From positions 1 through 64,000 of the forward strand of contig NIVC01001809.1 of assembly GCA_002269645.1 (NCBI GenBank): DNA of 64,000 bases, written 5' to 3'. The DNA comes from Macrostomum lignano (Eukaryota). This document shows, in pieces, positions 6,846 through 64,000 of the stretch; position 1 is the stretch's first letter, and each line of letters opens with the position of its first letter. The translations under genes and the position numbers were made by a program. Below the pieces are notes generated by a model that ran no database searches, was not told where the DNA came from, and saw nothing but the letters and a program-made list of their open reading frames with translations.

Positions 6846-7009
6846 AGGGCCATAAAAAAGCAATAAAGTAATTTTTGTATTACCAAATAATTGCTGCAGA
6901 ATAAATAAACAAATATTAATTAGAAAAATAAGTATAATTCTCCATCAGAAAATTTTTTATCCACTACAATAAAAAATACCATTTTTCACTCCTAAATAAT
7001 ACTATCTAA

Positions 7010-34982: not shown

Positions 34983-35013
<31 letters not shown>

Positions 35014-36849: not shown

Positions 36850-36880
<31 letters not shown>

Positions 36881-37327: not shown

Positions 37328-37827
37328 GACAGTCTCTGGCAATATAGCTGACTCGCTTACTGAAGCTGGGGGGGAGGGGGGTTAAAGAGGAGCCAACTTG
37401 CTGTTTTATAGACAGATAAATAGCTAAGACCGAAAAATGGAATTTCGAAATGTTGTAATTGTGAATAAAAAATCAATTTCAGTGAAAAACCGATACGATT
37501 GAGAGACAGTGCTTGGGTAAGTTATTATATTAATAAGTATTTTTTAGACCAATCTCTCAATCGTTTTGTGTTCACTAATTGATTTTTTAAATATTTTTGC
37601 GGGAAATTCTGCATTAAAATACGAAGGGTATACTACAAATACTAAAATGAACTCAATTGACAAGTCACTTGCAATTAAAGTTTTAAAACAGTTGAGCGTT
37701 TGCTCTGTTTTCAGTAGTTTATCTGCGCAGTGTCACTTGAATTTAATGTGCCAGCTAAAACTTCCTCTCCTTCTCGCGGGGTTTGTGATTAATTACCAGC
37801 AAGCATTTATCTCGGTGTGCACAAGTG

Positions 37828-38062
37828 CTCAATCCGGCTAAGTCGGATGAGAGATGAGAGAGCGGTAAGGAGAAAAGTCAAGGTCAGACAGGCCCAATCC
37901 GGCTCAGCCAATGAGAGAGCGGTAAGGAGAAAAGTCAAGGTCAGACAGGCCCAATCCGGCTCAGCCAATGAGAGAGCGGTAAGGAGAAAAGTCAAGGTCA
38001 GACAGGCCCAATCCGGCTCAGCCAATGAGAGAGCGGTAAGGAGAGAAGTCAAAGTCAGACAC
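37828..38062. repeat. 57-bp tandem repeat, ~4 copies
   Basis: AGCGGTAAGG recurs at 37861, 37918, 37975 and 38032. Confidence 0.9.
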
Positions 38063-43135: not shown

Positions 43136-44058
43136 TTAGCTCGTAAATTAAAGCATTGTGTTCAGAATTTTCTGTGAATTTTTTCGAAAGTAGCCAGAAC
43201 GACAGTTAATTGCAGCACATTTTTGCATATGTTTACAACTCGTCAATCACATCCTTGAACAAGCGTTCCTTTAGACTTTCAGGCAAATGAGGGCTAACTG
43301 TACACTTGAGCTGTGTCTAAACATAGGTCTTTGTACACTTAACAAGCACTTCTTATTACAGATTATTATAGATATGGGCTGCGCCCACTGTGGGTAAACT
43401 CTTTCATACGAGCGTAATCCCACAGTCCCAGTCTCTATTAAAGTTGGGAGAATATGAAAAAACGCCTTCATACACCGGAACCCGAAAAATTCGCGCTTAG
43501 AAAAGCCTTCCCTTCCAGGTTAATACGCAGTCAAGATTACTTATTGGTGCTTATTTGTGCAGGGAACTTCTCTCCTGTTTTTGTTTTGCTTTGACCAGCA
43601 AGAGCACTCTGCTATGCATTTCTGTGCTGCGCTTTGACGGACCTGGCCTTTTTCTCCCAGCCTTCCCTCCAACCAGCGTTTAATACTTCTGTAGCAGCCC
43701 CCTGCTCTGCCTGGAATTTCTGTCCGTCTGCTTTTGAGTGTTCCGCCTTCTCTGCGGCCTGCGAGTCTCTGTCACTATGGTCTGTCATTCATAGGTGTAT
43801 TGGGGTAGGCAGAAGGAGGGGAGACAGAAGGAGTGTCACAGCACTGATCACAGTGCTCAGGTCCCAGCAAAGTGACAGCTCATAGGGCTCTCTTCCTCCC
43901 CTCCTTCTCCCTCCCTCTCATCCTCCTCCCTCCGTCCCCTACTTCTTCTTTCTTTATCTCCCTCCCCTCCTTCTCCCTCCCTGCCCTCCTTTCTCCCTCT
44001 CAGTTCCCTTCCTCCTTCTAAACACCGCTTTTTAACCTCAACACCCCTCACCAGAACT

Positions 44059-47000
44059 ATGGGCCAAAATCAAAGCCGCCATCAGGCCTTCAGCACCGAC
44101 AACATCACGCCGACTGCTGCAACCCATGCAAACTTCTGCGACATCGTCCGAGCTACTCTACGTGCCGCATCTCAAAATCGCTTTGATGACGTCCAGTTTT
44201 TCGTATCACAAATCAATGACCAATCAAATAAAGAAGCCTGCTGCATCAAGGCTGCCGAAAAAGCTGCAATGAATGATCATTTTCAAATCGTCCAGTTTCT
44301 CGTACCGCTAATCAATGACCAATCAAATAAAGACGCCTGCTGCATCAGGGCTGCCGAAGAGGCTGCAATCCGTGGTTACTTTCAAATCGTCCAGTTCCTC
44401 GTACAACTAATTAATGACCAATCCAATAAAGACGCCTGCTGCATCAAGGCTGCAGAAAATGCTGCATTCATGGGTCACTTTCAAGCCGTCGAGTTCCTCG
44501 TACCACTAATCAATGACCAATCAAATAAAGAAGCCTGCTGCATCAAGGCTGCCGAAAAAGCTGCAATGAATGATCATTTTCAAATCGTCCAGTTTCTCGT
44601 ACCGCTAATCAATGACCAATCAAATAAAGACGCCTGCTGCATCAGGGCTGCCGAAGAGGCTGCAATCCGTGGTTACTTTCAAATCGTCCAGTTCCTCGTA
44701 CAACTAATTAATGACCAATCCAATAAAGACGCCTGCTGCATCAAGGCTGCAGAAAATGCTGCATTCATGGGTCACTTTCAAGCCGTCGAGTTCCTCGTAC
44801 CACTAATCAATGACCAATCAAATAAAGAAGCCTGCTGCATCAAGGCTGCCGAAAAAGCTGCAATGAATGATCATTTTCAAATCGTCCAGTTTCTCGTACC
44901 GCTAATCAATGACCAATCAAATAAAGACGCCTGCTGCATCAGGGCTGCCGAAGAGGCTGCAATCCGTGGTTACTTTCAAATCGTCCAGTTCCTCGTACAA
45001 CTAATTAATGACCAATCCAATAAAGACGCCTGCTGCATCAAGGCTGCAGAAAATGCTGCATTCATGGGTCACTTTCAAGCCGTCGAGTTCCTCGTACCAC
45101 TAATCAATGACCAATCAAATAAAGAAGCCTGCTGCATCAAGGCTGCCGAAAAAGCTGCAATGAATGATCATTTTCAAATCGTCCAGTTTCTCGTACCGCT
45201 AATCAATGACCAATCAAATAAAGACGCCTGCTGCATCAGGGCTGCCGAAGAGGCTGCAATCCGTGGTTACTTTCAAATCGTCCAGTTCCTCGTACAACTA
45301 ATTAATGACCAATCCAATAAAGACGCCTGCTGCATCAAGGCTGCAGAAAATGCTGCATTCATGGGTCACTTTCAAGCCGTCGAGTTCCTCGTACCACTAA
45401 TCAATGACCAATCAAACAGAGACGCCTTCTGCATCGAGGCTGCAGAAAAAGCTGCAGACAATGGTCACTTTCAAATCGTCCAGTTCCTTATCTCGTGTCT
45501 CTCTAGTTCCCATCAGAGAGAAAATCTCCGCTTCCAATGCGTACTCAAAGCTTGCTCTCGTCTGCGCGAAGATGCAGTTGCCTCCCTCGGCCTCGAGCCC
45601 AAATGGCTCTTCCAATCCACCACCATCCTCAGGTTCACTGCAGCAATGGCCATCGAAGGCAGGAACTCTGTTCTCACCGACACCCTCTCTCGAATGCAGC
45701 CAGCTCGCATCACACAGCTGCTCCGTCTCTCTATCACTCAAAGACACGTCGCTCTTGCTGTCACGCTGATCAATCATGAGCGAGTCAGCACACAGCTTGT
45801 CGATCTGCCAGACAGCACTGGAGCCACTGCTCTCATGCTGGCAGCTGATGCAGGTCATCACGAGCTCATTGAGAAACTCATCGATCTCGGTGCGTCAGTG
45901 CGTGCTGAAGACAGTCAGGGTCGGACTGCTCTGTCACGAGCGTGCGAAGCCGGTCACGTGCGAGCAGCCAAGGCTCTGATGGATGCAGGAGCGGATGCCA
46001 ACCATCGAGACAATCACGGCCTCACCTGTGCGCAACTCGCACAAAGATTCGACCAGCGGCAGGTGCTCCGCCTGCTGAATCCCACCGAGTCAGTTCCCAT
46101 TAATTGCCATTCCACTTCCTATCACTTCAATTCCTCACCTCGCTTTCATTCACACATTCCAGAAAACAACAGCACACCCACACAACCGCTCAAAGCCGCT
46201 CAATGTGAGTCTCATTCTCCTTGGCCCACTCTGCAAATATGCACTCTCACCTCTCCCACCCACCACGCTATCCTTCCAGACTCTCTGACAAAGAGCTGCA
46301 TCAACTGCTCAGCGATGCAGGATTCACCCAGCAGAGAGCAAAGTGTCAGCAAAACCTGGCTGACTGGCTACAAGAAGTCGCTCGAGTCCTCACACAGGAT
46401 CACAGGCGAATGACCGGCAGCTACGCAGAGGGCTGGGCAAACAGTCTGGTGCAAGTCAACGGCAGGACAGCTGCAGACTCCGACATTGACTGGACTGTGC
46501 TGGTTGCTGGGCAAATGTTCCATCTGGAAGGTGGCTGCGACAGAAAAGGTTCCTGCGGCTACGACACTCCGCTCAAGGTCAAGGAGGGCCACGCACAAGT
46601 GGCAGTCGGAGCAGGTCAGTGACGCTGCGCTCATCATCACAATGCCGCAATCCCCAATCCAAGCCCCCGTCAACTTTGCTCAATTTTTTATTCGATACCT
46701 GAACTTCAGAGCTCACAAGTTCAACCTGAGTTTGAGACCTGGCTGACATTCCTTTCAGGACTCATTTCGCTTTGAATAAAATTTCTGGCAAGCAATCACT
46801 CAACTAAAGTCCCAGCAATTGCACTGCCTCACCACCTCAGAGGTTATTAAACAATTATGAAGCAATGCCTTGCTTTCTCTTTGCCCTAAAATAATTTTTC
46901 TCTTTCTCCGCCCATCATCAACTCCATAGCGGTGCGCCTGCATGCATTTCAACGAATACTTTGCTTCATTCACTGATTGCAGTAGTAGCACTGACACACG

Positions 47001-48688
47001 AACTCAACCAACACATTCAAGCAGTTGCAAACCAATCCATCTTGTTCACTCGCCACACTGCCACTCTCCGCTCACTGCGCTCTACAGGCAGCCAACCTGC
47101 TGTGACAGCCACGGCGTGCGGTGTGCGGCCTGCACAGGACACGTGCCATGCGATCCACTGCTGCAGCAGCTTCTGTGTAGGCAGAGTTAGAAAACTAATT
47201 AAAAACGATAATTGTGTTCACCTCGTTCGCGCGACCAGACCGAGCTCGACCAACGAGCTCAGAGTGAGCTTCAGCTTCCAAGAGAAAGACATCATGAGAC
47301 GGCTGAGCACAGTCCAGGGCCAGCTGTTCACACTCATCAAGTTCATCTTCAAGAGACACTTGCCGCTCACTCTGGACACACCTGGACTCAAGACCTACCA
47401 TGCAAAGACTCTGCTCTTCGCAATGCTGGAGAGGTATGGCAAAAGTCCTGAAACTGAGGCTTGGCAGCCCCACAATCTGATCGCTCTGCTCAAGGAGTCG
47501 CTCGACATGATGCTTAAATTTATGAGGTCAAGGAGGTCGCCCAATGAGTGCATGCCGCACTTCTTCATGCCCGACGCTCCGCTCTACTTCAAGAACGCTG
47601 GAATCGGCGACGACTTCGACAACACGAAAGCGAGGGTTCGAGACCGACTTTGTGAGCTGAGAAGCGACATCGGCGGAGTGGTCGACCAGCTGAGAAAACA
47701 CGTGAGACCTCTGCAGTCAGAGAAGTTCTACTTTCACCCGTTCACTCTGCTTCCTCTAACAGCGCCGCCTGCTGTCACGAAGATCCGGGAAAGAAGTGAA
47801 TGTCCCAAAAAGTACTACAAGTTCGCAGATGTGTACAGTGTGGTGCACGAGTGTGTGAGCGAGCTGCAGTCGGAATCGAGCGACAGAAACACCCGGATGA
47901 GGCAGCTCAGTCTCCTGCATGAGCAGCAGTGGTGCAAGTGCGCCGCCCTGTGCATGACCGCCATGACGCATTTGAAGTTCGGAGAATCTGAGGAGGCTGA
48001 GAGACTCGCGATGGAGCTGCAGAGACATCAGCTTGAGTCAGGGTTGAAGCCGCAGAATATTCGAGATGAGAGTCGCAAATGGAGTTTGAGTGATATAAAA
48101 CTGCCAGAATACTCAGACTGGGCGTGGAGGTTCTGCCTCCCCTGCGACTCTCCGCCTCGCTTCCCATTCCTTCCCGAGTTCACGCAGACTCTGTTCACAG
48201 CCAGACTGTCGCAGCCTCTCTCCTCCCACCTGTACGTGAACTTCCGCTGCCTGAGCTGGAGTCTCCAAGCTGAGCTGCTTCGCAATCGCGCACCTGCAAT
48301 CGCATTCGATCATTGGATTGAACAGCTGCTTGGAGACCCGGACTTGGAGGAGCTGCTCACTCTGGCTCACTACAGCGACTGCCGCGAGCACGTGGAGCTC
48401 AGCCTGCAGCAGATGGAGATGATCGAGAAAGAGAGACGCGTCGCCATGGAGACGCAGGACGAGGAGAAGATCGTCTGGGTCAGGCAGAAGCGGTGGCGAG
48501 TTTCGAACCGCAGTGGCAGCGACAGCGGCGCTCACCGCAGCAGGGAAGATGAGGAGCGGAGGCTGTGGGCGAGGGCGAGGCTGCGGCGAGACGGGGCCGA
48601 TTTGGGTCGCCTGGTTGCCATGGAAACTGCAGCGGAGCAGAGAGACAGCTGGACTCACGCCAAGCTCAGTCGGATGAGACTGCAGTAA
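44059..48688 (+). CDS. Ankyrin-repeat / Mab-21 (cGAS-like receptor, cGLR) fusion protein, copy 1, 1321 aa
   Basis: join(44059..46088,46280..46614,47088..48688) = 3966 nt with canonical GT-AG introns and a continuous frame. Contains 13 x 33-aa AAxxGHxxIVxFL repeats and about 3 canonical ANK repeats (TALMLAADAGH, GRTALSRACEAGH). NTase motifs TGSYAEG...SDIDWTVLV and QDTCHAI; Mab-21 motifs HLV...LRVSFSFQEK, LKTYHAKTLLF, W...NL and PHFFMP. Confidence 0.88.
44215..45501 (+). repeat. Coding 99-bp ankyrin-like array, 13 units, organised as (ABC)x4 + D
   Basis: AAGAAGCC recurs at 44231, 44528, 44825 and 45122 (297-bp period). Confidence 0.95.
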
Positions 48689-49304
48689 CCTGAGGACTTC
48701 GTTGCTCAGATTTTCAAGTTTTGCTGGACTGGAATTTGAGACGATAACTGTGTACTTTTACTGCTTTGCTGTAAACTGTCTGTAGATTTCCCTTCCCTTC
48801 CAGCCATCGAGTGCGAGCAGCCCTCCTGCTGTGAACTGCAGTTTTGTACTTTTGTGCTGCAATTCAATTCGCACTGCATGCTGAATTACCTTTTCTGTTC
48901 AAACTGCGTGTCTGCTTTGATGCGGGCTTTTCTCTGCGATTTTGTTTTGCGGACTTCAATACCCAATTTCCAATGCTTTTTAATGAAATATTTGAGCAAA
49001 AGGTACAGGCAGCAGTTGTCTGCATGAAGCCAGAAATTTCAAAGGTCGGCTGGGTCCGGGAGAAACTGGAGAGACTTGATGCAGCAGCTTGAGCTGAACT
49101 CCTAATTTTGTAAGCTTCTCTGGTTTCCGCACGAGCCGTTTGAGAAATTTTACTGCATATGTTTGAGATAGATATTTAATATGTACTTTTACGGCTTAAT
49201 AATACAGTGCGTACTTTCTCCTGGATTATTTAATCACCTGATCTGGAAATCAGCTCAATCAGTCTGCAAATTGATTTCATCATGTGCTCATGTACCCTGC
49301 ATTG

Positions 49305-49540
49305 ATTGACAGCCTGACAGCTCCCTCATGAGCATTCAGTGACTGACAGCCTGACAGCTCCCTCATGAACATTCAGTGACTGACAGCCTGACAGCTCCCT
49401 CATGAACATTCAGTGACTGACAGCCTGACAGCTCCCTCATGAGCATTCAGTGACTGACAGCCTGACAGCTCCCTCATGAACATTCAGTGACTGACAGCCT
49501 GACAGCTCCCTCATGAACATTTAGTGACTGACAGCCTGAT
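49305..49540. repeat. 37-bp tandem repeat, ~6 copies
   Basis: GACTGACAGCCTGACAGCTCCCTCATGARCATTCAGT. Confidence 0.9.
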
Positions 49541-49949
49541 AGCTCGTAAGCATCAGCTACAATTCCGTTACTTTATCTAGTGCCATCATCTATTTATCTA
49601 TCTAAATAAATCTATTTTATCATAATGGTAAAAATTAAATAGAAAATTATAAAATGCTTCGATTTGTACAAGTCAATCGGTAAACTTGCTTTGGTAAAAA
49701 TTTCAGCATCTTTGTTCAGCTTAAGTTAAAAAAATTGGAAAAATTCGTGTATGAATATTTTGAATATTTTGAATACATTACGAGCGTATGTTGCTCTTAG
49801 TACCACAAGTCTAAACACAATTTTTGATGTTTTGGACCTACAAAACAAATTTTATTAATTTCATTCTTGGCTTCGTACCTGCAAAATCCGTAATGTAAAT
49901 CAACCTGCCCACCATCTGACGGTTGGCAGAGGATCTCGGACTGCAGGAC

Positions 49950-50330
49950 CGCCACTGACTCACCTGTATTGGCGCCACTGACTCATCTGTATTGGTGCCA
50001 TGACTCATCTGTATTGGCGCCACTGACTCATCTGTATTGGCGCCACTGACTCATCTGTATTGGCGCCACTGACTCATCTGTATTGGCGCCACTGACTCAT
50101 CTGTATTGGCGCCACTGACTCATCTGTATTGGCGCCACTGACTCATCTGTATTGGCGCCACTGACTCATCTGTATTGGCGCCACTGACTCATCTGTATTG
50201 GCGCCACTGACTCATCTGTATTGGCGCCACTGACTCATCTGTATTGGCGCCACTGACTCATCTGTATTGGCGCCACTGACTCATCTGTATTGGCGCCACT
50301 GACTCATCTGTATTGGCGCCACTGACTCAT
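49950..50330. repeat. 23-bp tandem repeat (CGCCACTGACTCATCTGTATTGG)n, ~16 copies
   Basis: Nearly perfect units. Confidence 0.95.
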
Positions 50331-50409
50331 GTTTGGAAAATACGTGCATTCTGTCAGCTGCCTGCATCTGCTCAGACATAAACCAACCGAAATCCTTTGA
50401 GTGCTCGAC

Positions 50410-51072
50410 TCATTCAGAATTCTGAGCTCTCTTCACTTTGACGGATTCGAAACTCCGCCTGAACTCGTGTGGAAAAGTGCAGTCCCTGAAAACCATGGAT
50501 CCCATTTTGTTTGGAGCCTCAGCAACTCCAGCTTCATTTGAAAACCCACAGATTCGGCCAATTGAACAAATGCGAACCTTGAACAGAAAGGAGCAGTGCA
50601 CAGAAGTGAAAAAATATTCAACATATTTGTAAGCACTGAATAGTCGGAGATACTCATTAGATGCGAACTTATCTGGTCCATCTGATCTGTCAATCACGCA
50701 TTTATTGTAGTTAAATGTTAGTGGCCACCTTTGACGATTTCCGGACAAGTGCCTTAAAGAATGGTCCATGGTTGCAAATAGCGTTCGCACTCTCGTTGCA
50801 CAAACAGGTGAGTTGGCAGTTTGAAATGAAAACAGCCCCAGTCTGGGGTGCCGCAGCTTTCCTCGCGATAGCAACTGGTAAATTCACCGGCTGTCGGTGC
50901 CTTTAATTTCTAGATCTCCTTGATACAGATTGAGCCTGAGAAAGTTCCATTTAGTGACACCGCTACCTGGTACTTTAGTACAGCAATCAGTACAGTTATT
51001 CGGGGACTGTGCTAATGCCATCAGCATTTGATGCGCAGTATTATGGTGACAGTAATCTTCACAAAGTTCCAC
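50410..51072 (-). mobile_element. Probable P/THAP9-like transposase C-terminal fragment
   Basis: Contains NCTDCC (CxxC) followed by LSRGKLRHP, resembling the RGxLxxPS motif of P-like transposase C-termini; in-frame stop present. Confidence 0.45.
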
Positions 51073-51304
51073 CTTTGGTGCCAGAACAAAAATCGGTCTG
51101 TCAGAAACTGCAGTCGAAATTTCTCCGGTCCGGTTTCACAGCTTTGCCAAAGTAACTTCCCAACCCTGTTAATTTCAACTAAACCAGATACCAAGTTTTA
51201 CTTTTAGCTTTTCTGAAAGTCATGCAAACAGACTGCTGGGCATGGGGGGCGCGGCTGACAGATTTGAATTCTGGCTGGCTGCTTGCGTTTTTATCGATGA
51301 GTGA

Positions 51305-51620
51305 TCTAGGGGTATCTATGGGTAATCTAGGGGATCTCTATGGGTAATCTAGGGGTATCTATGGGTAATCTAGGGGTATCTATGGGTAATCTAGGGGTAT
51401 CTATGGGTAATCTAGGGGTATCTATGGCTAATCTAGGGTATCTATGGGTAATCTAGGGGTATCTATGGGTAATCTAGGGGTATCTATGGCTAATCTAGGG
51501 GTATCTATGGGTAATCTAGGGGTATCTATGGCTAATCTAGGGTATCTATGGGTAATCTAGGGGTATCTATGGGTAATCTAGGGGTATCTATGGCTAATCT
51601 AGGGGTATCTATGGAATCTA
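51305..51620. repeat. 21-bp minisatellite (GGGGTATCTATGGGTAATCTA)n
   Basis: About 15 units. Confidence 0.95.
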
Positions 51621-51629
51621 AGTGAGGCC

Positions 51630-51997
51630 CGGCAGCAGCCCAGGACAGCAGCGCCATCAGCAGCAGCCGCCTCCTGCAGCTGCAGTAGCGCATTGAGGAT
51701 CGCCAGAAGCCCTACCCGGTTCTGGCCAGTGATGGCAACAGGGAAATCGAATGGCCTCACGATCTGCTCAAGCTGACCAGGGCCTCCCCGCCTCTCATAT
51801 TCAGCTCGGCCAGGGCCCCAGCCGATAAGTCGTTCAATTCTACCACCGCATCTACTACTAGCGTCAGTAGTAAGAAAAAGAAAAATAAAACTCCGTCCAC
51901 CGCTGCTTCTGCGCAAAAGAACAGCGGTGGAAAATCTGCGTCAACTGTTATGACGACTAGGAGCAGAAGCAAGCAGCTGCAGCAAGGGGGAGAAAAG
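51630..51997 (+). pseudogene. Duplicated, 5'-truncated pseudo-exon of the GPATCH8-like gene
   Basis: Homologous to ~32415..32776 (RIEDRQKPYPVLASDGNREIEWPHDLLKLTRASPPLIFS). CAG>TAG stop at 51686..51688; donor and downstream intron sequence are retained. Confidence 0.85.
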
Positions 51998-52089
51998 GTC
52001 AGCTGAGTATTTGTTGCTGCTTTATACTACTTATAATAAGTAGTTTCTTTTTTGTTTTCATGAGATTTAGTGTCAAAACTGGAGTTCTC

Positions 52090-52370
52090 CCCAATTCCAC
52101 TTTAAAATCTCCCCTCCCCCCAGTGCCCCATCAGAATCTCCTACCAATGCCACATCAGAATCTCCCACCAATGCCCCATCAGAATCTCCCCCAGTGCCCC
52201 ATCAGAATCTCCCCCAATGCCTCATCAGAATCTCCCCCAATGCCTCATCAGAATCTCCCCCAATGCCCCATCAGAATCTCCCCCAATGCCTCATCAGAAT
52301 CTCCCCCCTCCGAATGCCCCATCAGAATCTCCCCTCTCCCAATGCCCCATCAGAATCTCCCCCAATTTCG
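52090..52370. repeat. ~23-bp minisatellite (CCCCAATGCCCCATCAGAATCT)n, homologous to 32900..33322
   Basis: Same position relative to the duplicated exon, with a related but distinct unit. Confidence 0.85.
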
Positions 52371-53056
52371 AACCACAGTGCATGCAAATTTTCGCGTGAG
52401 GCAGACACGTTTCGGCTGAGCTGCCCAGCCTCTCAATTGCAGTCTCGGGCTTCATCAGTTGTTTATCATTAAAGTACAGCCGAGCTCTGGCAGCCCATCT
52501 CTGTTCTATCCAGCTCTCGGCCACAGCAATGCACTGCATTTTGCATTCCTGCTAACAATGGTTGATAGCAATGGCTTATTTATGATAGAATAAGGCAGTC
52601 TTGAGCCGTAGGGAGCGGGTGGGTAGAGAGGCCAGCTCAAACTCAAGCAGCAATTATCTCTGCTCGCTCGCTATTCTCAGGCCAGCGCACCGCTCTGCCA
52701 GCCTCCCTGCGGTTTAGAGGCGAGCTCTGTCCAGGCTTTGCGGTTGCCAGGGGCAACCTACTCTGTTTTGAGTAGTGAGCTGGATGGAGCTTCATACTAG
52801 TTGGACTTGTTAATTGTCTGAGACAGGGGTTACGGGGGGTTTGGGTGGTTGGAGAGGCCAGTATGGGGCGATTACGAACTCAAGCACTTTTCTTTTTGCA
52901 GCTGCGCGTACTGAGCTGGGTGGGGCCATTCCAGATGAAGGTCAGAGACTGCGAAAACATTTTCGGTGCTTTTCTTTTGCAACTTTGCCCCAGGAGCAGC
53001 TCTTCTTCGGGTGCAGTGGCTGCAGCGGAGGGTCAGGACAAGATTTTGGAGCTGCA

Positions 53057-54367
53057 GGGATGGTGACTGTAGGGATGGTGACTGTAGAGATGGTGACTGT
53101 AGGGAGGGTGACTGTAGGGATGGTGATTGTAGGGATGGTGACTGTAGGGATGGTGACTGTAGGGATGGTGACTGTAGGGATAGTGACTGTAGGGATGGTG
53201 ACTGTAGGGATGGTGACTGTAGGGATGGTGACTGTAGGGATGGTGACTGTAGGGATGGTGACTGTAGGGATGGTGACTGTAGGGATGGTGACTGTAGAGA
53301 TGGGACTGTAGGGATGGTGACTGTAGGGATGGTGACTGTAGGGATGGTGACTGTAGGGAGGGTGACTGTAGGGATTGTGATTGTAGGGATGGTGACTGTA
53401 GGGAGGGTGACTGTAGGGATTGTGATTGTAGGGATGGTGACTGTAGGGAGGGTGACTGTAGGGATTGTGATTGTAGGGATGGTGACTGTAGGGATGGTGA
53501 CTGTAGGGAGGGTGACTGTAGGGATTATGATTGTAGGGATGGTGACTGTAGGGAGGGTGACTGTAGGGATTGTGATTGTAGGGATGGTGACTGTAGGGAT
53601 GGTGACTGTAGGGAGGGTGACTGTAGGGATTGTGATTGTAGGGATGGTGACTGTAGGGATGGTGACTGTAGGGAGGGTGACTGTAGGGATTGTGACTGTA
53701 GGGATGGTGACTGTAGGGAGGGTGACTGTAGGGATTGTGATTGTAGGGATGGTGACTGTAGGGAGGGTGACTGTAGGGATTGTGATTGTAGGGATTGTGA
53801 CTGTAGGGATGGTGACTGTAGGGAGGGTGACTGTAGGGATTGTGACTGTAGGGATGGTGACTGTAGGGATGGTGACTGTAGGGATAGTGACTGTAGGGAG
53901 GGTGACTGTAGGGATTGTGATTGTAGGGATGGTGACTGTAGGGAGGGTGACTGTAGGGATTGTGATTGTAGGGATGGTGACTGTAGGGATGGTGACTGTA
54001 GGGAGGGTGACTGTAGGGATTGTGACTGTAGGGATGGTGACTGTAGGGAGGGTGACTGTAGGGATTGTGATTGTAGGGATGGTGACTGTAGGGAGGGTGA
54101 CTGTAGGGATTGTGATTGTAGGGATTGTGACTGTAGGGATGGTGACTGTAGGGAGGGTGACTGTAGGGATTGTGACTGTAGGGATGGTGACTGTAGGGAG
54201 GGTGACTGTAGGGATTGTGATTGTAGGGATGGTGACTGTAGGGATGGTGATTGTAGGGATGGTGACTGTAGGGATGGTGACTGTAGGGAGGGTGACTGTA
54301 GGGATGGTGACTGTAGGGATGGTGACTGTAGGGATGGTGACTGTAGGGATGGTGACTGTAGGGATGG
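53057..54367. repeat. 15-bp G-rich minisatellite (GGGATGGTGACTGTA)n, ~87 units
   Basis: Variants GGGAGGG/GGGATTG and GACT/GATT, plus one 14-bp unit near 53300; source of the long TIPTV/QSPSL ORFs. Confidence 0.97.
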
Positions 54368-55339
54368 TTTCATTAATCCAATCGTCACTGCAAGTTTCCG
54401 CCTGCGCTTGCAAGCCAAATCTCGCCACAGGGGCCGGTTGCCACCTGCTAAAAAATAAAACAGAAGGAGCGGCAGTGATGAGAGGCTTCTGCAGAAAAGC
54501 AAAAGAATGTCAATTACTGCTGCTAAATGCACTCGCCTAATTCAACCCAGCAGATTCTCAACTGCCTGAGCTGCGCACGAGAGGAAAAAGGCGAAAGCAT
54601 AGGAGAGTCGGGAGAGAACCAGAGCACTGTTGCCAGCCAATGCTCTGCAGCTGCGGCAGTGGGCAGAGTGAGAGAGAAAGCAGGGCAAATTTAACAATGC
54701 ATCTTCTTGCACATTAGAGAGCCTCCTCAAACCGATGCACTGCGGGACTGAGCAGCATTTTACACCGCTCAGTGGGCCGTTAAATGCATTTAAAGATCTC
54801 ACACTGCACTGAGGCACAATGGGTCTTTCTGGCAACCGGCTGCGCAAACCTTTGACTGACATCTGCCACACTGACAGCAGCCACGGATCATAGGTAGGAC
54901 TCATGAAGATTTTTAAAATTCCTTATAAAAATTTTTACAGCCACAAAGCAGCCCCCTTGCTCTCTCATTCGCTCTCCTTTTCTTCCTCTCTTTAAAAAAC
55001 ACTCCCTCCTCTCTCCCTCCCTCCCCTCCTTCTCATCTCCCTCCCTCCTCTCTCCCTCCCTCCCCTCCGTCTCCTCCTTCCTCCCTCCCCTCCTTCTCAC
55101 TCCCTCCCCTCCTTCTCCCTCCCTCCCCTTCTACTCCCTCTCTCCCTCCTTCTTCCCTCTTTCCTTTTCCTCTCTCCTTCCCCCTTCCTTTCTCCTTCCC
55201 CTCCTTTTCCCTTTCTCCTTTTCCCTCCCTCCTTCTCCCTCCCTCCTCCTCCCTCCCTCCCTCCTTTTCCCTCTTTCCTTCCCTCCTTGTTAACCTTGTT
55301 AACCTTGTTAACCTCTTCCTTGCTTCCCTTAACAGAACT

Positions 55340-58300
55340 ATGGCCCAGAATCCAAGCCGCCATCAGCCCCTCACCACCGACAACATCACGCCAACTGCTC
55401 GACGTGCTGCAACCAATGGCACCTTGCGCGAGATCGTCCAAGCTACTCTAACTGCTGCATCAAATGATCGCCTTCAAGATGTCCAGTTCCTCGTACCAGT
55501 AATCAATGGCCAATCAAATAAAGACGCCTGCTGCATCAAAGCTGCCGAAAAGGCTGCATTACGAGGTCACTTTCAAATCGTCGAGTTCCTCGTACCACTA
55601 ATCAATGACCAATCAAAAAAAGACGCCTGCTACATCAAGGCGGCCGAAATTGCTGCAATCCGTGGTCACTTTCTAATCGTCGAGTTCCTCGTACCGCTAA
55701 TCAATGACCAATCAAAAAAAGACGCCTGCTGCATCAAAGCGGCCGAAAATGCTGCAATGAATGGTCACTTTCAAATCGTCGAGTTCCTCGTACCACTAAT
55801 CAATGACCAATCAAAAAAAGACGCCTGCTACATCAAGGCGGCCGAAATTGCTGCAATAAATGGTCACTTTCTAATCGTCGAGTTCCTCGTACCACTAATC
55901 AATGACCAATCAAATAAAGACGCCTGCTGCATCAAGGCTGCCGAAAAGGCTGCAATGAATGGTCACTTTCAAATCGTCGAGTTCCTCGTACCACTAATCA
56001 ATGACCAATCAAAAAAGAAGCCTGCTGCATCTACGCTGCCGAAAAGGCTGCTTACGATGGTCACTTTAAAGCCGTCGAGTTCCTCGTACCACTAATCAAT
56101 GACCAATCAAATAAAGACGCCTGCTGCATCAAGGCTGCCGAAAATGCTGCGATGAATGGTCACTTTCAAATCGTCGAGTTCTTCGTACCACTAATCAATG
56201 ACCAATCAAAAAAAGAAGCCTGCTGCATCTACGCTGCCGAAATGGCTGCTTACGATGGTCACTTTAAAGCCGTCGAGTTCCTCGTACCACTAATCAATGA
56301 CCAATCAAATAAAGACGCCTGCTGCATCAAGGCTGCCCAAAAAGCTGCAATCAGTGGTCACTTTCAAATCGTCGAGTTCCTCGTACCACTAATCAATGAC
56401 CAATCAAATAAAGACGCCTGCTGCATCAAGGCTGCCCAAAAAGCTGCAATCAGTGGTCACTTTCAAATCGTCGAGTTCCTCGTACCACTAATCAATGACC
56501 AATCAAATAAAGACGCCTGCTGCATCTACGCTGCCGAAATTGCTGCAATGAATGGTCACTTTCAAATCGTCGAGTTCCTCGTACCACTAATCAATGACCA
56601 ATCAAAAAAAGAAGCCTGCTGCATCTACGCTGCCGAAAAGGCTGCTTACGATGGTCACTTTAAAGCCGTCGAGTTCCTCGTACCACTAATCAATGACCAA
56701 TCAAAAAAAGACGCCTTCTGCATCAAGGCTACCGAAGAGGCTGCAGAATATGGTCACTTTCACATCGTCAAGTTCCTCGTACCACTAATCAATGACCAAT
56801 CAAAAAAAGACGGCTGCTGCATCAAAGCTGCCGAAAAGGCTGCATTCCGAGGTCACTTTCAAATCGTCGAGTTCCTCGTACCACTAATCAATGACCAATC
56901 AAAAAAAGACGCCTTCTGCATCAAAGCTGCCGAAAAGGCTGCATTCCGAGGTCACTTTCAAATCGTCGAGTTCCTCGTACCACTAATCAATGACCAATCA
57001 AAAAAAGACGCCTGCTGCATCTACGCTGCCGAAAAGGCTGCAAAATATGGTCACTTAAAAGCCGTCGAGTTCCTCGTACCACTAATCAATGACCAATCAA
57101 AAAAAGACGCCTTCTGCATCAAGGCTACCGAAGAGGCTGCAGAATATGGTCACTTTCAAATCGTCGAGTTCCTCATACCACTAATCAATGAACAATCAAA
57201 TAAAGACGCCTGCTGCATCAAAGCTGCCGAAAAGGCTGCAATGAATGGTCACTTTAAAGCCGTCGAGTTCCTCGTACCACTAATCAATGACCAATCAAAA
57301 AAAGACGCCTTCTGCATCAAGGCTACCGAAGAGGCTGCAAAATATGGTCACTTTAAAATCGTCGAGTTCCTCGTACCACTAATCAATGACCAATCAAATA
57401 AAGACGCCTGCTGCATCAAAGCTGCCGAAGAGGCTGCATTCCGATGTCACTTTCAAATCGTCGAGTTCCTCGTACCACTAATCAATGACCAATCAAAAAA
57501 AGACGCCTGCTGCATCTACGCTGCCGAAAAGGCTGCATTCCGAGGTCACTTTAAAGCCGTCGAGTTCCTCGTACCACTAATCAATGACCAATCAAATAAA
57601 GACGCCTGCTGCATCAAAGCGGCCGAAATTGCTGCAAGAAATCGTCACTTTCAAATCGTCGAGTTCCTCGTACCACTGATCAATGACCAATCAAAAAAAG
57701 ACGACTGCTTCATCTGGCCTGCCGAAACGGCTGCTTACGATGGTCACTTTAAAGCCGTCGAGTTCCTCGTACCACTAATCAATGACCAATCAAAAAAAGA
57801 CGCCTGCTGCATCAAGGCTACCGAAGAGGCTGCAGAGTATGGTCACTTTCACATCGTCAAGTTCCTCGTACCACTAATCAATGACCAATCAAAAAAATAC
57901 AACTGCTGCATCAAAGTTGCCGAAAAAGCTGCAGACGATGGTCATATTCACATTGTTCAGTTCCTTATCTCGTGTCTCTCTACTCCCCATCAGAGAGCAA
58001 ATCTCCGCTTCCAATGCGTACTCAATGCCTGCTCTCGTCTTGATGAATCTGTCGTTGCCTACTTCGGCCTAAAGCCTCAATGGCTCTTCCAATACAACAC
58101 CATCCTCAACTTCACTGCTAGCATGGCTATCCAAAACCGGAACTCTCTTCTCAACACCGCCCTCTCTCAAATGACACCACCTCAAATCACACACCTCCTC
58201 CGTCTCTCCATCTCTCAATCACACGTCGCTCTTGCCGCCACACTCCTCAATCATCACCTATTCAGCACACCACGTCGATCTACCGTCCATATCGATCTAA

Positions 58301-61300
58301 CAGAGGAAAACACCCGAGCCACCGCTCTCATCCTCGCTGCTCATGCTGGTCATCACGAAATCATTCACAAACTCATACTACTCGGCGCCTCCATCCACGC
58401 TCAAGACAACCACGGTCGCACTGCTCTCTCACGAGCCTGCCAAGCCGGTCACGTGCGAGCAGCCAAGACTCTGATGGATGCAGGAGCCGATGCCAATCAT
58501 CGAGACAATCACGGCCTCACCTGTGCGCAACTCGCACAGAGATTCGACCAGCGGCAGGTGCTCCGCCTGCTAAATCCCACCGAGTCAGTTCCCATTAATT
58601 GCCATTCCACTTCCTATCACTTCAATTCCTCACCTCGCTTCCATTCACACATTCCAGAAAACAACAGCACACCCACACAACCGCTCAAAGCCGCTCAATG
58701 TGAGTCTCACTCTCCTTGGTCCACTCTGCAAATATGCACTCTCACCTCTCCCACCCACCACGCTATCCTTCCAGACTCTCTGACAAAGAGCTGCATCAAC
58801 TGCTCAGCGATGCGGGATTCACCCAGCAGAGAGCAGAGTGTCAGCAAAACCTGGCTGACTGGCTACAAGAAGTCGCTCGAGTCCTCACACAGGATCACAG
58901 GCGAATGACCGGCAGCTACGCAGAGGGCTGGGCCAACAGTCTGGTGCAAGTCAACGGCAGGACAGCTGCAGACTCCGACATTAACTGGACTGTGCTGGTT
59001 GCTATGCGAGAGTTCCATCTGGAAAGTGCCTGTGATCGAACAGATTCCTGCAGCAACGACACTGTCAACGACAATGATTCCTGCAGCAACGACACTGTCA
59101 ACGACAATGATTCCTGCAAAGACGCCCCTCGGCTGCAGGTTACGGAGGGGCACGCACAGGTGGCAGTCGGAGCAGGTCAGTGACGCTCCGCTCATCATCA
59201 CAATGCCGACATCCCCAGTCTAAGCCTGCGTCAACTTTTAAAGTCTCAAATTCAAATTTTCAAATTTTTATTCAATACCTGAACTTCAGAGCTCACAAGT
59301 TTAACCAGAGTTTTAGACCTGACTCAAATACCTTTCGGCACTCAGTCTGCTCTGAATAAAAACTCCTGAAACCAATCAGACAACTCAAGCCCCAGCAATT
59401 GCACTGTGTGATAAATAGGCAATTAGATAATAGCATGCACGGTGAGCAATTATTTAGGCCCTAGACAAACCTACTTGGAGCGTTCGGAGATTTTAAAGCT
59501 ATTAATCCTAATCGCCTATCGCCGGTCGGCGAGTTCTACCAGTCTTCTCCAATAGCCGCAGATACAGTACAAGAAAATAAAGAACACGAGGGAACACAAA
59601 CCGAAAGATTTAGAGAGTGATAATCCTATTTCAAGAATAACTAACTTGATTGACGGTTTAATTTGATTAGCTGAGTTACAAGATTTAGACAAACGACGCA
59701 GATAACTAGAGTTGACAAAACGACAATAACGGTTAATAAATAATGATTATATACGCACTGACAAGCGGATCTCAGCTGAAGAAGAAAGAGGCACCGAACA
59801 CAGGACCACGGAGAAGACTCCTAACCCCTGGCCTAAGCCAGAACCTACTCTCAAACGAGAGCCCTGCCGAACCGACCGTTCAACGGAGTACCGACTAAGT
59901 TCTATCGGCACTGCCCTTCAGTGTAACACTGGGGCCCTCGGGGTCGAGGCCGCGTACTTGATCAGATCCGACAGTCTCTATCTAACCGCGCTTGATAGCG
60001 ACGACTTCAGACAGGAATTTGCCGTAGACGTTACGCCACAAGACTACTGCGGTTGGGCGGGAACAAAGATATGGACCGGGGGTGATGAAATCAAAACGCC
60101 TCAAAGCGCGAACCAACAAGGGGAGGAAAATCGGGCCACCGGCCGGGAACTGGACAAGACAAAACCGGGGAAAGGAGAGAAGCGAGATCCGATTGCCAAA
60201 ACACACTTTCATATATAGTCAGAGTCAAACCCTCACAAAACCCCCCTCAAGCCGGGTGGTGGTCGTCTGGCCGGCCGCTTGCTTAAGCCGAATTGAACTG
60301 TGCCCGCGGCGCCGGGTAGAACTGAAACTTGCCGCGTGCCAGGGTCCAGGCCGGTTCTGATTGGCTGACCGCGCAAAGCTGGGGTTCGCAGACACTCTCA
60401 ACCCTCCGCTGAGTCACAGATGGCGTCTGATTTCTAGCCTGTTTACAAATTTAGATTCTAACTAACAAGGAAAAAAAAGTACACCAAAAACGTATGACTA
60501 ACTAAAGCAAAATAACAATTCAATAACAATATAGAAACTAATGCAGTCAATTTACAACAAAATAAACGCAAGAGGTTATGAAACAATCACCGCCTCAGAG
60601 GTTATGAAACAATTATTAGGCAATGCCTTGCTTTCTCTTTCCCCTTAAAATAATTTTTCTCTGTCTCCGCCCATCATCAACTTCATAACGGTGCGCCTGC
60701 ATGCATTTCAACGAATACTTTGCTTCATTCACTGATTGCAGTAGTAGCACTGACACACGAACTCAACCAACTCATTCAAGCAGTTGAAAACCAACCCATC
60801 TTGTTCATTCCCCACAATGCCACTCTCCGCTCACTTCGCTCTACAGGCAGCCAACCTGCAGTGACAGCCACGCCGTGCGGTGTGCGGCCTGCACAGGACA
60901 CATGCCATGCGATCGAGTGGGGCAGTTTCGGCGAGGACAGAATTGAAAAACTGCTTCCTGGTGCTCGTAATTATTACTGGAATTCTGTTGACCTCGTTCG
61001 GGCGACCAGACCGAGCTCGACCAACGAGCTCAGAGTGAGCTTTAGCATCCAAGAGAAAGAGATCATGAGACGGCTGAGCACAGTCCAGGGCCAGCTGTTC
61101 ACACTCATCAAGTTCATCTTCAAGAGACACTTGCCGCTCACTCTGGACACACCTGGACTCAAGACCTACCATGCAAAGACTCTGCTATTCTTCCTGCTGG
61201 AGAAGCATGGCACAGATCCTGAAACTGAGGCTTGGCAGCCCCACAATCTGATCGCTCTGCTCAAGGAGTCTCTTGACATGATGCTGAGCTTCATCGACTC

Positions 61301-62387
61301 GAGCAGCTCGCCGGATGAGTGCATGCCGCACTTCTTCATGCCCGACGCTCAGCTCTACTTCAAGAACGCTGGAATCGGCGGCGACTTCGACAACACGAAA
61401 GCGAGGGTTCGAGACCGACTTTGTGAGCTGAGAAGCGACATCGGCGGAGTGGTCGACCAGCTGAGAAAACACGTGAGACCTCTGCAGTCAGAGAAGTTCT
61501 ACTTTCACCCGTTCACTCTGCTTCCTCTAACAGCGCCGCCTGCTGTCACGAAGATCAGGGAAGGAACTGATAGCAAATACCTTATTAGAGATCGGGCGAT
61601 CAGGGAAGTAATGGGGTGCTTTGATTTCTACGAGTACTACAAGTTCGCGGACGTGTACTGTGTGGTGCACCAGTGTGTGAGCGAGCTGCAGTCGGAATCG
61701 AGCGACAGAGACACCCTGATGAGGCAGCTCAGTCTCCTGAATCATCATCGGCTGCAGTGGTGCAAGTGCGCCGCCCTGTGCATGACCGCCATGGCGCATT
61801 TGAAGTTCGGAGAATCTAAGAAGGCTGAGAGACTCGCGATTGAGCTGCAGACACATCAGGTCGAGTCAGGGTTAATGCTAAGGGAAATTCAAGTGGGATA
61901 TTGCCAAACTAAATTGCCGGAAAACTCAGACTGGGCGTGGAGGTTCTGCCTCCCCTGCGACTCTCCGCCTCGCTTCCCATTCCTTCCCGAGTTCACGCAG
62001 ACTCTGTTCACAGCCAGACTGTCGCAGCCTCTCTCCTCCCACCTGTACGTGAACTTCCGCTGCCTGAGCTGGAGTCTCCAAGCTGAGCTGCTCCGCAATC
62101 GCGCACCTGCAATTAAACTGGAGGATTGGAAGCGGGAGCTGGAAGAAGACCCGGACTTGGAGGAGCTGCTCACTCTGGCTCACTACAGCGACTGCCGCGA
62201 GCACGTGGAGCTCAGCCTGCAGCAGATGGAGATGATCGAGAAAGAGAGACGCGTCGCCATGGAGACGCAGGACGAGGAGAAGATCGGCTGGGTCAGGCAG
62301 AAGCTGGAGAGACTTGATTCAGCAGCCGGAGTCCTCAAAGCCTCGTCGCAAAGTCGAGGTCGGAAAAGGAAGGCCGAGTCAGACTGA
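55340..62387 (+). CDS. Ankyrin-repeat / Mab-21 (cGLR) fusion protein, copy 2, ~1728 aa if the frameshift is corrected (possible pseudogene or assembly error)
   Basis: join(55340..58583,58775..59175,60847..62387) with the same splice sites and phases as copy 1. 25 x 33-aa repeats; a -1 frameshift in the A-run at 56011..56016; SDIN instead of SDID. Confidence 0.8.
55505..57978 (+). repeat. Coding 99-bp ankyrin-like array, 25 mosaic units
   Basis: Scaffold NDQSxKxAxxIxAxExAAxxGHFxxVxFLVPLI. Confidence 0.95.
59407..60586. mobile_element. ~1.2-kb insertion in intron 2 of cGLR copy 2, possibly an LTR-retroelement fragment
   Basis: Absent from the 473-bp intron of copy 1. Homology breaks after GCACTG (59406) and resumes at TCACCGCCTCAGAGG (~60587). 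Starts with TG; TGTAACA followed by CTGGGGCC near 59923..59937 could be an LTR end plus PBS. The insertion is certain, its identity is not. Confidence 0.5.
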
Positions 62388-64000
62388 CTGCCAGGAGCGG
62401 TGTTCGATGCTGACAAAATTTTCATGTACTTCGTTTTTTCTAATAAAACTGTTTGTTCTTCTGCTTGCCGACTTGATGGGGCTCTGCCGGTTCTGCATGA
62501 AAACACCTCTACATGCTGTTGGATTGTTTGTACATGCTTGGAATGTACTACGAATGAGACTGCAGTGACCTGAGGACTTCGTTGCTCAGGTTTTAAAGTT
62601 TTCTGGGCTGAAATTTGAGACGCAAAAACTGTGTACCGCTGGTTCCCCTTATTTTTTCAGTTTAATTCAGTTAATTCCACAGGTGTTTTGCTGTTGGAAT
62701 GTCTGTACATTTGCCCTTGTTTAGCTGCCTTTCTAGGAAATGAGCACATCGAGAGCCATCGAGTGCGAGCAGCCCTCCTGCTATTAACTGCAGTTTTGTA
62801 CATTTTTGCTGATTGAATTGCATGCTGAATTGCCTTTTCCGTTCAAACTGCGTTTCTGCTTTGATGCGGGCTTTTCTCTGCGATTTTGTTCTGCGGACTT
62901 TAATGCCCAATTGCCAATGCTTTTTAATGACATATTCATGCCAAATGTGCAGGTAGCAACTATCTGGATGAAGCTGGCAAACTCAAAGGTCGGCTTGGTC
63001 AGGGAATAAGAAGTAGGAATATATGATTTCGGTAGCTGGACAAAATGACAAAAGTTTCTGGGGTAAGGCTTACAGTGTTAAATCATAGACTCCTAAAAAT
63101 AGCATCATATGCTATATCTAGAAGTCCTTGGTTAAATACATAAGAAGGCTTCTGTCCAGCCTTGCGCGTCTCTATAGTGGGGAGAGAGACAACGATAAGT
63201 GTTGATTGAACTGAAGGAAATTTGCGATTTGAAAGTTGAAAAACTTTTTCTGTTTCGAAACTTTGTCAGTTGAATCTAAAAGGGGTATAAAATTTTAGGA
63301 CTGGAATTATTTCGTTGACATGCCTAGTATGACATATTTGCAACAGAATTTTGGTTAGCCTCCCGCAGAGCTAAATTCATTCATTCATAACAACTTGCTA
63401 TGCTCATTTCCCGAAACTTATCCAGTGAGCAAAAGAAGAAAAGGCTTCCCCACAGTGCGACTTTTTAACACATTCTCCAAACTTTTTCAAATGTGCGAAA
63501 TGTTTTGAAGCGGCAAGCAAGTAACGAGCTATTGTAATGGAGTCCTGAAATAAATACATATTTTGGTTCGATTTTTGTCATGTTGAGTAATCTATAGATA
63601 CATCTCACCAAAATTTGTCGGAATTTAAACTTAACCCCTATTTCTATAAAATGTGATTCCATAAAAGTCTTATTCTGTGCGGCCTTTGAAATTCTAAATG
63701 TGCGAATGGAGGAAAATTTTTTGCTTGGCTCGCTGGCAGGGAACAGAAGGAAAATCGTGTGGGTTAAAATCTTTGGTTCAATTTGACTCAGATGAAATTT
63801 GGCGCACCCAATCACAAATGGTGCCTCAAAGTTCAAATAATTTATTTGCATTGCATTCATCCATTGGCTATCTATATATTGAGTCCACCTTCTGATACAA
63901 TTTGAAAACAAAAGACTTATTTCTGAAGCACAATTGTGGAAGTGTAGCTCGTCTAACAAATAGTAGGAAAACAAACGGCATATGCTGTGACAGTGAACCG

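Follow-up and report, generated by a model that had tools for sequence, protein, structure and literature searches.

For most cGAS-like receptors (cGLRs), no activating ligand is known, and only a minority of them carry extra domains. Do such appended repeat domains give these enzymes their ligand specificity? A concrete way to ask this question is offered by a pair of genes from the flatworm Macrostomum lignano, which occupies positions 44059–62387 of a 64,000-nucleotide stretch of genomic DNA (assembly GCA_002269645.1, contig NIVC01001809.1, positions 1–64,000 of the forward strand; hereafter, the window). The two genes, which we call gene 1 and gene 2, are paralogs arranged in tandem on the + strand, and each of them encodes an ankyrin-like array followed by three canonical ankyrin (ANK) repeats, a cGAS/Mab21-type nucleotidyltransferase (NTase), and a family-specific tail. 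We consider it moderately probable that the pair represents two tandem genes from a large family of ANK-fused cGLRs that is specific to Macrostomum, in which gene 1 would function as a ligand-gated NTase with the ANK repeats as its input or regulatory module, and gene 2 would be a decaying or non-catalytic copy.

Gene structure of the tandem pair

The genes are part of a tandem duplication (43957–49061 and 55234–63005) with a DNA identity of 85–91%, and no extra copies or fragments of their coding sequence were found elsewhere within the window. A preliminary description of the locus had joined the open reading frames (ORFs) at GT–AG sites into two continuous genes. This holds for gene 1, which is intact, consists of three exons, and has a product of 1321 amino acids (Table 1). 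Gene 2 follows the same exon plan, but its reading frame is broken inside the array by a frameshift that is beyond the reach of splicing (see below).

Both introns of gene 1 begin with GTCAGT and end with AG, and equivalent sites are present in gene 2. The resulting junctions agree with annotated M. lignano paralogs. The donor GA/GTCAGT at 46088/46089 (the slash marks the junction) yields ...LLNPTE/LSDKELH, where the M. lignano protein P0002 reads ...LLNPTE/ISDKELH. The intron 2 acceptor at 47087/47088 yields ...VAVGAG/SQPAVTATACGVRPAQD, matching the annotated paralogs P0001, P0002, P0007 and P0016 (...VGTG/SQPAVAATACGVRPAQD...).

Two other sites were tried and rejected. The donor at 46204 does not match the phase of the acceptor at 46280, and the acceptor at 46294, which is in phase with it, creates a stop codon at the junction. 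The acceptor at 46983, where the third ORF piece starts, maintains the frame, yet the 35 residues that it adds are missing from every annotated paralog, and it was therefore dropped in favor of 47088.

The predicted enzyme core of gene 1 resembles cGAS

The 579 residues that follow the ANK region of gene 1 were modeled with AlphaFold2 using an alignment of 37 family sequences, which gave a mean pLDDT (predicted local distance difference test) of 88.4 and a pTM (predicted template modeling score) of 0.90. When the Protein Data Bank (PDB) was searched with this model using Foldseek, all of the top 50 matches were mouse or human cGAS (E-values of 7e-8 to 2e-5, probability 1.0, about 360 aligned columns, and a template modeling score of 0.5–0.56 on the target). 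The model displays the bilobed NTase plus helical fold of the cGAS type, and the predicted fold of gene 1 thus matches the one that the preliminary description had anticipated.

The Pfam profile of the Mab-21 helical domain, Mab-21_C (PF20266), matches both genes above its gathering cut-off of 24.1 bits (27.9 bits for gene 1 and 31.1 bits for gene 2). PF03281, the profile of the NTase half of Mab-21, has no match in either gene, be it in the ORFs or in the spliced enzyme part, so the NTase half of gene 1 is divergent in sequence. An hhalign comparison of the family profile with the mouse cGAS catalytic domain returned a probability of 94.5% and an E-value of 7.9e-8 for the C-terminal half only, with the span from HLVRA...RVSFSFQEK to HFFMPDAPLY pairing with FYLVPK...WRLSFSHTEK...HYFIPKFNLF of mouse cGAS. 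A single-sequence search of the PDB sequences was weak (E-value of 0.12), with cGAS as the sole family matched repeatedly, and a profile search of the PDB with the untrimmed alignment was dominated by ANK proteins and contained nothing informative on the enzyme. Distant relatives of gene 1 carry PF03281 together with PF20266, which connects gene 1 to PF03281-positive proteins by transitive homology. Considering (i) the fold, (ii) the alignment with mouse cGAS, (iii) the Mab-21_C matches, and (iv) this transitive homology, the enzyme is a cGAS/Mab21-family NTase, as had been proposed for the locus. The helical domain and the ANK repeats that had been expected on the Pfam level were found in both genes, and the NTase half was not.

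In the gene 1 model, the active-site residues G46-S47, D68-I-D70 and D129 are located on the expected strands: G46 and S47 follow strand 41–45, D68 and D70 open strand 68–80, and D129 is in strand 127–136. This modeled layout is that of a polymerase-β-type NTase. The core motifs TGSYAEG and QDTCHAI, initially reported for both genes, are indeed shared by them, and the accompanying SDID is confined to gene 1. Among paralogs down to about 25% identity, the GS pair is found in 35 of 35 sequences, D68 and D70 in 33 of 35 each, and D129 in 31 of 36 (with Glu in three more). That the GS/DxD/D set has been kept across such deep divergence argues for catalysis in the family, including gene 1.

This conservation bears on a different reading of the pair, in which it would belong to a lineage-specific, fast-evolving structural or regulatory family with a non-immune or non-enzymatic role like that of MAB21L1/2, for example one linked to reproduction. 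In their cGLR survey, Li et al. 2023 (PMC9980059) describe Mab21L1-type proteins as non-immune and devoid of a functional active site, and they report no activity for M. lignano members in their Table S3. Furthermore, no immune context was found within the 64-kb window. Retention of the full catalytic set in about 90% of the paralogs is, however, hard to explain without catalysis and makes a non-enzymatic role less likely, and we regard this reading as very doubtful.

The last ~250 residues of the protein form a well-conserved tail (e.g. ...DWAWRFC...FLPEF...YVNFRCL...) with invariant residues. The tail is modeled as one rigid body with the enzyme (pTM of 0.90), and its pLDDT when modeled alone is 85.9. 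Contrary to the preliminary description, in which the tail was helical, the predicted structure is mixed α/β and comprises four helices resembling tetratricopeptide repeats (TPRs), a small sheet, and further helices. A Foldseek search of the PDB with the tail-only model gave no significant match (the best E-value, 0.41, was to the TPR-like IFIT1), and we thus treat the tail as a family-specific domain.

Gene 2 is probably a decaying or non-catalytic copy

Gene 2 differs from gene 1 by several independent defects. Inside its array, a run of six adenines takes the place of the seven found in the other units, which amounts to a 1-nt deletion relative to the unit consensus and interrupts the reading frame. 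Because the stretch in which both array frames are open is only ~12 nt long, no intron can remove this frameshift. In the DxD motif, the second catalytic Asp is replaced by Asn (SDINW in place of SDIDW), and the pattern G-S...[DE]x[DE]...[DE] therefore reads D-I-N at its middle element. Gene 2 is one of the rare exceptions to the active-site conservation described above. The NTase also contains a 22-residue Asp/Asn-rich insertion, encoded by a 33-nt repeat of 2.3 copies. The Met-Gly start is lost, with MAQNPS (55340–55357) replacing the MGQNQS of gene 1 (44059–44076), and intron 2 is enlarged by ~1.18 kb. Gene 2 is thus likely to be a pseudogene, or at least a copy that is decaying or non-catalytic.

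Could gene 2 nevertheless be intact and functional? The array frameshift would then be a homopolymer error of sequencing or assembly, and the DIN motif would mark a regulatory, non-catalytic paralog. The frameshift is indeed located in an A-run (A6 versus A7), a classic site of long-read errors, and the frames on either side of it are open for hundreds of codons. The ratio of nonsynonymous to synonymous substitution rates (dN/dS) between gene 1 and gene 2 is below 1 throughout, with values of 0.50 in the ANK linker, 0.62 in the enzyme and 0.75 in the tail (0.61 overall). The joint presence of the DID-to-DIN change, the Asp/Asn-rich insertion, the change from MG to MA, and the intron insertion speaks against this possibility, and we consider an intact gene 2 unlikely, although not far-fetched.

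The window contains the ~1.18-kb insert of gene 2 intron 2 only once, and the M. lignano paralog locus L001 described below lacks it. As a short direct duplication (AGAGGTTATGAAACAAT) is found at its 3′ edge, the insert is possibly a mobile element.

Table 1 Features of gene 1 and gene 2 (positions are those of the window).
Feature	Position	Strand	Basis
Gene 1 exon 1: leader (MGQNQS...), 33-aa ankyrin-like array, degenerate ANK linker, three canonical ANK repeats	44059–46088	+	ORF; Pfam Ank_2, E 9.8e-52
Gene 1 ankyrin-like array: 13 units of 99 nt, (A-B-C)x4 + cap unit D	44209–45495	+	Tandem Repeats Finder
Gene 1 canonical ANK repeats, GATALMLAADAGHHELIEKL... to ...RLLNPTE	45820–46088	+	Best Pfam Ank/Ank_2 stretches, residues 581–661
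Gene 1 intron 1: 191 nt, GT...AG	46089–46279	+	Phase check; sites conserved in gene 2
Gene 1 exon 2, N-terminal half of NTase core: GS (TGSYAEG, 46413–46433), DxD (SDIDW, 46479–46493)	46280–46614	+	Splice model, motif coordinates
Gene 1 intron 2: 473 nt, GTCAGT...ACAG	46615–47087	+	Paralog-supported acceptor
Gene 1 exon 3: third catalytic Asp (QDTCHAI, 47135–47155), RVSFSFQEK (47261–47287), Mab-21_C (~47372–47584), tail (from ~47726), stop	47088–48688	+	Pfam, hhalign, Foldseek
Gene 2 exon 1, frameshift-interrupted: leader (MAQNPS...), 25-unit ankyrin-like array, linker, canonical ANK repeats	55340–58583	+	ORFs 55340–56095 and 56152–58908 in different frames; Pfam Ank_2, E 1.1e-75
Gene 2 ankyrin-like array: 25.4 copies of 99 nt, 87% matches	55454–57965	+	Tandem Repeats Finder
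Gene 2 frameshift: A6 run (A7 in other units), 1-nt deletion relative to unit consensus	56011–56016	+	Three-frame translation, unit consensus
Gene 2 exon 2: GS motif (TGSYAEG, 58908–58928), SDINW (58974–58988), in-frame 33-nt x 2.3 repeat insertion (59043–59118)	58775–59175	+	
Gene 2 intron 2, enlarged by ~1.18-kb insertion (~59407–60586) not in gene 1	59176–60846	+	Alignment break 46826/46829 vs 59406/60587
Gene 2 exon 3: QDTCHAI (60894–60914), Mab-21_C, tail, stop	60847–62387	+	Pfam Mab-21_C, 31.1 bits; model translation

The two ankyrin arrays differ in length and in variability

The Pfam profile Ank_2 matches 13 stretches of gene 1 and 16 stretches of gene 2, with further matches to Ank_4 and Ank, and Tandem Repeats Finder detects a 99-nt period with 13.1 copies in gene 1 and 25.4 copies in gene 2. 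The repeat spacing is exactly 33 residues throughout both arrays. The two methods thus agree that each gene carries an N-terminal tandem array of ankyrin-like repeats in addition to canonical ANK repeats, as had been noted at the outset. The array is followed by about three degenerate repeats and then by the three canonical ones (GATALMLAADAGHHELIEKL...), for a solenoid total of ~20 (gene 1) and ~32 (gene 2) repeats. In annotated paralogs, 3–8 of the characteristic units are found, compared to 13 and 25 in the genes of the window; in older assemblies, paralog arrays may have been collapsed, lowering their unit counts.

Identity between units is 85–100% in the two arrays. In gene 1, three unit types, A, B and C, are repeated four times in this order and are followed by a single cap unit. 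Tandem Repeats Finder reports the corresponding higher-order period of 297 nt with 4.4 copies and 98% matches, and the four 297-nt copies differ from each other by 0–1 nt, owing to a single base in the first copy. Such uniformity points to amplification in the very recent past or, alternatively, to an artefact of the assembly. In gene 2, 23 of the 24 complete units are distinct at the DNA level. The "long variable" solenoid of the preliminary description is therefore long in both genes and variable in gene 2, but not in gene 1.

Variation among the gene 2 units has a pattern. Thirteen of the 33 codons are invariant, and the changes are focused on codons 18, 21, 22 and 26, the entropy of which is 1.7–2.95 bits compared to 1 bit or less elsewhere. 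The GH pair at positions 23–24 of the unit aligns unit positions 21 and 22 with positions 13 and 14 of the ANK consensus (AAxxGH). We take these two to be binding-surface positions that contact the target and that are randomized in designed ankyrin proteins. The ratio of nonsynonymous to synonymous polymorphism (pN/pS) is 1.34 at codons 18, 21, 22 and 26 and 0.87 at the remaining codons, values that derive from few sites in a single array.

When the array and linker were used as query, a protein search gave only eight matches: five unnamed ENA sequences and three short ANK fragments of M. lignano. Since known family members were missed, this search is uninformative on other fusion partners of the array.

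The pair belongs to a family already catalogued in Macrostomum lignano

A search of protein databases with the spliced enzyme and tail retrieved 53 clusters, all named ones being from M. lignano and most carrying ANK and Mab-21_C domains, with a best identity of 81%. The paralog count that had been suggested for the genome, obtained here from protein databases, thus reveals a large family. An exhaustive representative search extended the list to 168 proteins at an E-value of 1e-3 or better, 99 of them at 1e-10 or better; its weak end consists of ordinary proteins with Mab-21 (PF03281) and Mab-21_C domains, some of which have TPR tails. The genes of the window themselves have no exact match in the protein database. 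One M. lignano paralog locus, L001 of the same assembly (GCA_002269645.1), is 91% identical over exon 3 and has a 15-nt minisatellite of identical type on its 5′ side. Its protein P0007 (PAA68676.1, BOX15_Mlig016402g1) has an identity to gene 1 of 78% over the query and of 83% in the trimmed alignment of enzyme and tail.

Two side observations concern other members of the family. P0008, an M. lignano protein of 1036 amino acids, has two NTase domains in a row and is either a real tandem-cGLR fusion or the product of two adjacent genes merged by the gene predictor. At L001, the paralog is adjoined by an LTR-retrotransposon pol gene with RVT_1, RNase H and integrase domains (1–2773, − strand).

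Fusions of this kind are not new, although the preliminary description had put the family forward as a candidate. Li et al. 2023 (PMC9980059) surveyed ~3000 cGLRs, 87% of which are stand-alone enzymes and some of which are fused to TPR or ankyrin repeats; their Table S2 lists M. lignano PAA accessions with Ank_2 domains. According to their Table S3, five M. lignano NTases (samples 89–93) were tested with dsDNA and poly I:C as constructs lacking the ANK part. Sample 93 is BOX15_Mlig016402g1, i.e. P0007, and sample 92 belongs to the same subfamily. Gene 1 and gene 2 are members of this catalogued kind; new here are the array lengths of 13 and 25 units, the 297-nt higher-order repeat of the gene 1 array, and the concentration of variability on few codons of the gene 2 array. 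Apart from Li et al. 2023, our literature search on Macrostomum with Mab-21, STING or innate immunity found nothing specific, and Macrostomum is not among the species of the per-species cGLR/STING table.

A possible role of the ankyrin solenoid

How might gene 1 work? In the account that we lean towards, its NTase would be a ligand-gated synthase of a nucleotide second messenger, like other cGLRs and possibly with an immune function, and the ANK solenoid would serve as a protein- or ligand-binding input or as a regulatory module. Unequal crossing-over between its highly similar repeats would diversify the ANK module, variation would reside on the binding-surface positions, and gene 2 would be a decaying or non-catalytic copy beside the intact gene 1. 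Ligand sensing by the ankyrin array is plausible; the idea that specificity can be reprogrammed by editing the array, which was part of the preliminary description, is speculation.

Several observations weigh against this account. The Pfam profile of the NTase half does not recognize the enzyme. The array of gene 1 is long yet not internally variable, and it is hence not a diversified surface. A pN/pS near 1, as in the gene 2 array, is also expected from neutral drift, and the array statistics are too thin for a claim of positive selection. Table S3 of PMC9980059 flags 15 selected active enzymes in its Note column, where samples 89–93 have no entry, although weak activity of these constructs is conceivable. 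The authors write that many cGLRs were inactive in vitro, probably because the right ligand was missing. Finally, the core of gene 1 is basic like that of cGAS and could itself bind nucleic acid.

The last point leads to a serious rival, in which the NTase core senses nucleic acid like cGAS does and the ANK solenoid is responsible for localization, scaffolding or autoinhibition, e.g. by an acidic array masking the core or by membrane anchoring via the N-terminal Met-Gly. The isoelectric point (pI) of the gene 1 core is 9.03, that of the mouse cGAS catalytic domain is 8.95, and that of the array is 4.9. Both gene 1 and P0007 begin with MGQNQS, an N-myristoylation-type motif, and the internal uniformity of the gene 1 array is what a spacer or scaffold would be expected to show. 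The core pI of the paralogs, however, spans 5.4–9.5 with a median of 7.6, which means that the family does not share a basic surface. Furthermore, an MG start is found in only 7 of 120 Met-starting family proteins, which rules out N-myristoylation as a family trait, and the NTase-only constructs of close homologs carry no active flag under dsDNA or poly I:C in Table S3 of PMC9980059. Nucleic-acid sensing by the core of gene 1 is therefore a rather unlikely alternative to gating by the array, albeit one to be taken seriously.

The pair also bears on why Macrostomum retained and expanded cGLRs while these were, as reported, lost in most flatworms. It combines an intact member with a very long, apparently recently amplified ANK array and, beside it, a seemingly decaying copy with a more diversified array. 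The corrected gene models identify gene 1 as the copy worth expressing, with the ANK part that was omitted in the published screen included.

Other features of the window

Both start codons are directly preceded by CT-rich microsatellites of the CCTCC type (43895–43999 and 55002–55280), which lie inside the duplicated unit. A 15-nt minisatellite of ~88 copies with 91% matches is located between gene 1 and gene 2 (53052–54368). It is also present 5′ of P0007 (L001 7422–8965, 89–90% identity) and therefore travels with loci of the ANK-cGLR family. The spacer between the genes contains four further minisatellites of 6–17 copies each, at 49303–49545, 49950–50330, 51292–51614 and 52117–52366, with periods of 37, 23, 21 and 23 nt, respectively.

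Downstream of the genes, a block about 100–400 nt 3′ of each stop codon is conserved with 85% identity (48802–49061 and 62754–63005), and the true 3′ ends of gene 1 and gene 2 are non-homologous (48491–48802 and 62304–62754). The block 3′ of gene 1 ends in an ORF (...KVGWVREKLERLDAAA) that is similar to the C-terminus encoded by gene 2 (...IGWVRQKLERLDSAA). This block is perhaps a relic, or else an alternative 3′ exon.

Farther from the pair, a GC-rich island (32000–38000) has a GC content of 0.56–0.67 compared to ~0.4 elsewhere. It harbors an ORF at 33290–36307 (+) encoding 1005 amino acids of low complexity, rich in Arg/Ser, Gly and poly-Gln, which has no Pfam match and whose exact product is not on record. 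The ORF at 9944–10819 (−) contains an NAD-dependent epimerase/dehydratase domain (PF01370, E-value of 1.4e-11) and is probably an exon of an NDUFA9-like gene. Two adjoining ORFs, 3507–4382 (−) and 6069–6863 (−), share a layout of a Cys-rich N-terminus, a region rich in Ser and Thr, a single hydrophobic segment and a tail; they are without a Pfam match and look like a second local duplication. The window opens with a tandem repeat (14–793) that is open in several frames, e.g. with QQAPIWSNKHQFGPTS units.

Comparison with known systems

The closest known relatives are the ANK-fused M. lignano cGLRs, with which the genes of the window share the cGAS/Mab21 fold, the GS/DxD/D residues, the position of the ANK repeats N-terminal to the NTase, and the genus (PMC9980059). 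They are set apart by their arrays of 13 and 25 near-identical units, compared to 3–8 in annotated paralogs, and by the presence of the full array, which the published M. lignano constructs do not contain.

Human and mouse cGAS (PDB codes 4k9b, 8sj2 and others) share with gene 1 the fold of the catalytic domain (Foldseek E-value of 7e-8) and its basic character, and with the gene 1 family the motifs RxSFS..E, YH.KT and HFF.P identified by hhalign. Sequence identity between cGAS and gene 1, however, is only 11–16%, the segment between the DxD motif and the third Asp is ~60 residues long in gene 1 compared to ~90 in cGAS, and gene 1 shows no sign of the zinc thumb. Gene 1 additionally has the extra C-terminal domain of ~250 residues and an ANK solenoid of ~680 residues.

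A more distant parallel is found in fungal NOD-like receptors (NLRs; Dyrka et al. 2014, PMC4986451), the ANK, TPR and WD domains of which display near-identical units, changing repeat numbers and hypervariable binding-face positions, a combination that has been read as fast receptor diversification. The arrays of the window are likewise made of near-identical, putatively sensor-type repeats that change in number and vary at few binding-face positions. Measured by the same features, i.e. a unit identity of at least 85%, variation in number, and positive selection on the binding face, unit identity here is 85–100%, the number of units among paralogs is 3–25, and pN/pS is 1.34, from few sites. 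The fungal proteins belong to another kingdom, use NACHT/NB-ARC as their signaling domain in place of a cGAS-like NTase, and carry the repeats at the C-terminus and not at the N-terminus. By this analogy, the N-terminal arrays might be the animal counterpart of the concerted-evolution repeats of fungal NLRs, with unequal crossing-over rapidly producing new protein-recognition surfaces that gate a cGAS-like enzyme, and with cGLRs responding to pathogen proteins or other non-nucleic-acid ligands in a phylum for which a large-scale loss of cGLR signaling is otherwise assumed, a step that we consider quite unlikely.

MAB21L1/2 and other non-catalytic Mab21 proteins have the Mab-21_C domain in common with both genes and a damaged active site in common with gene 2. 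They differ from gene 1 and from about 90% of the paralogs, which keep all catalytic residues.

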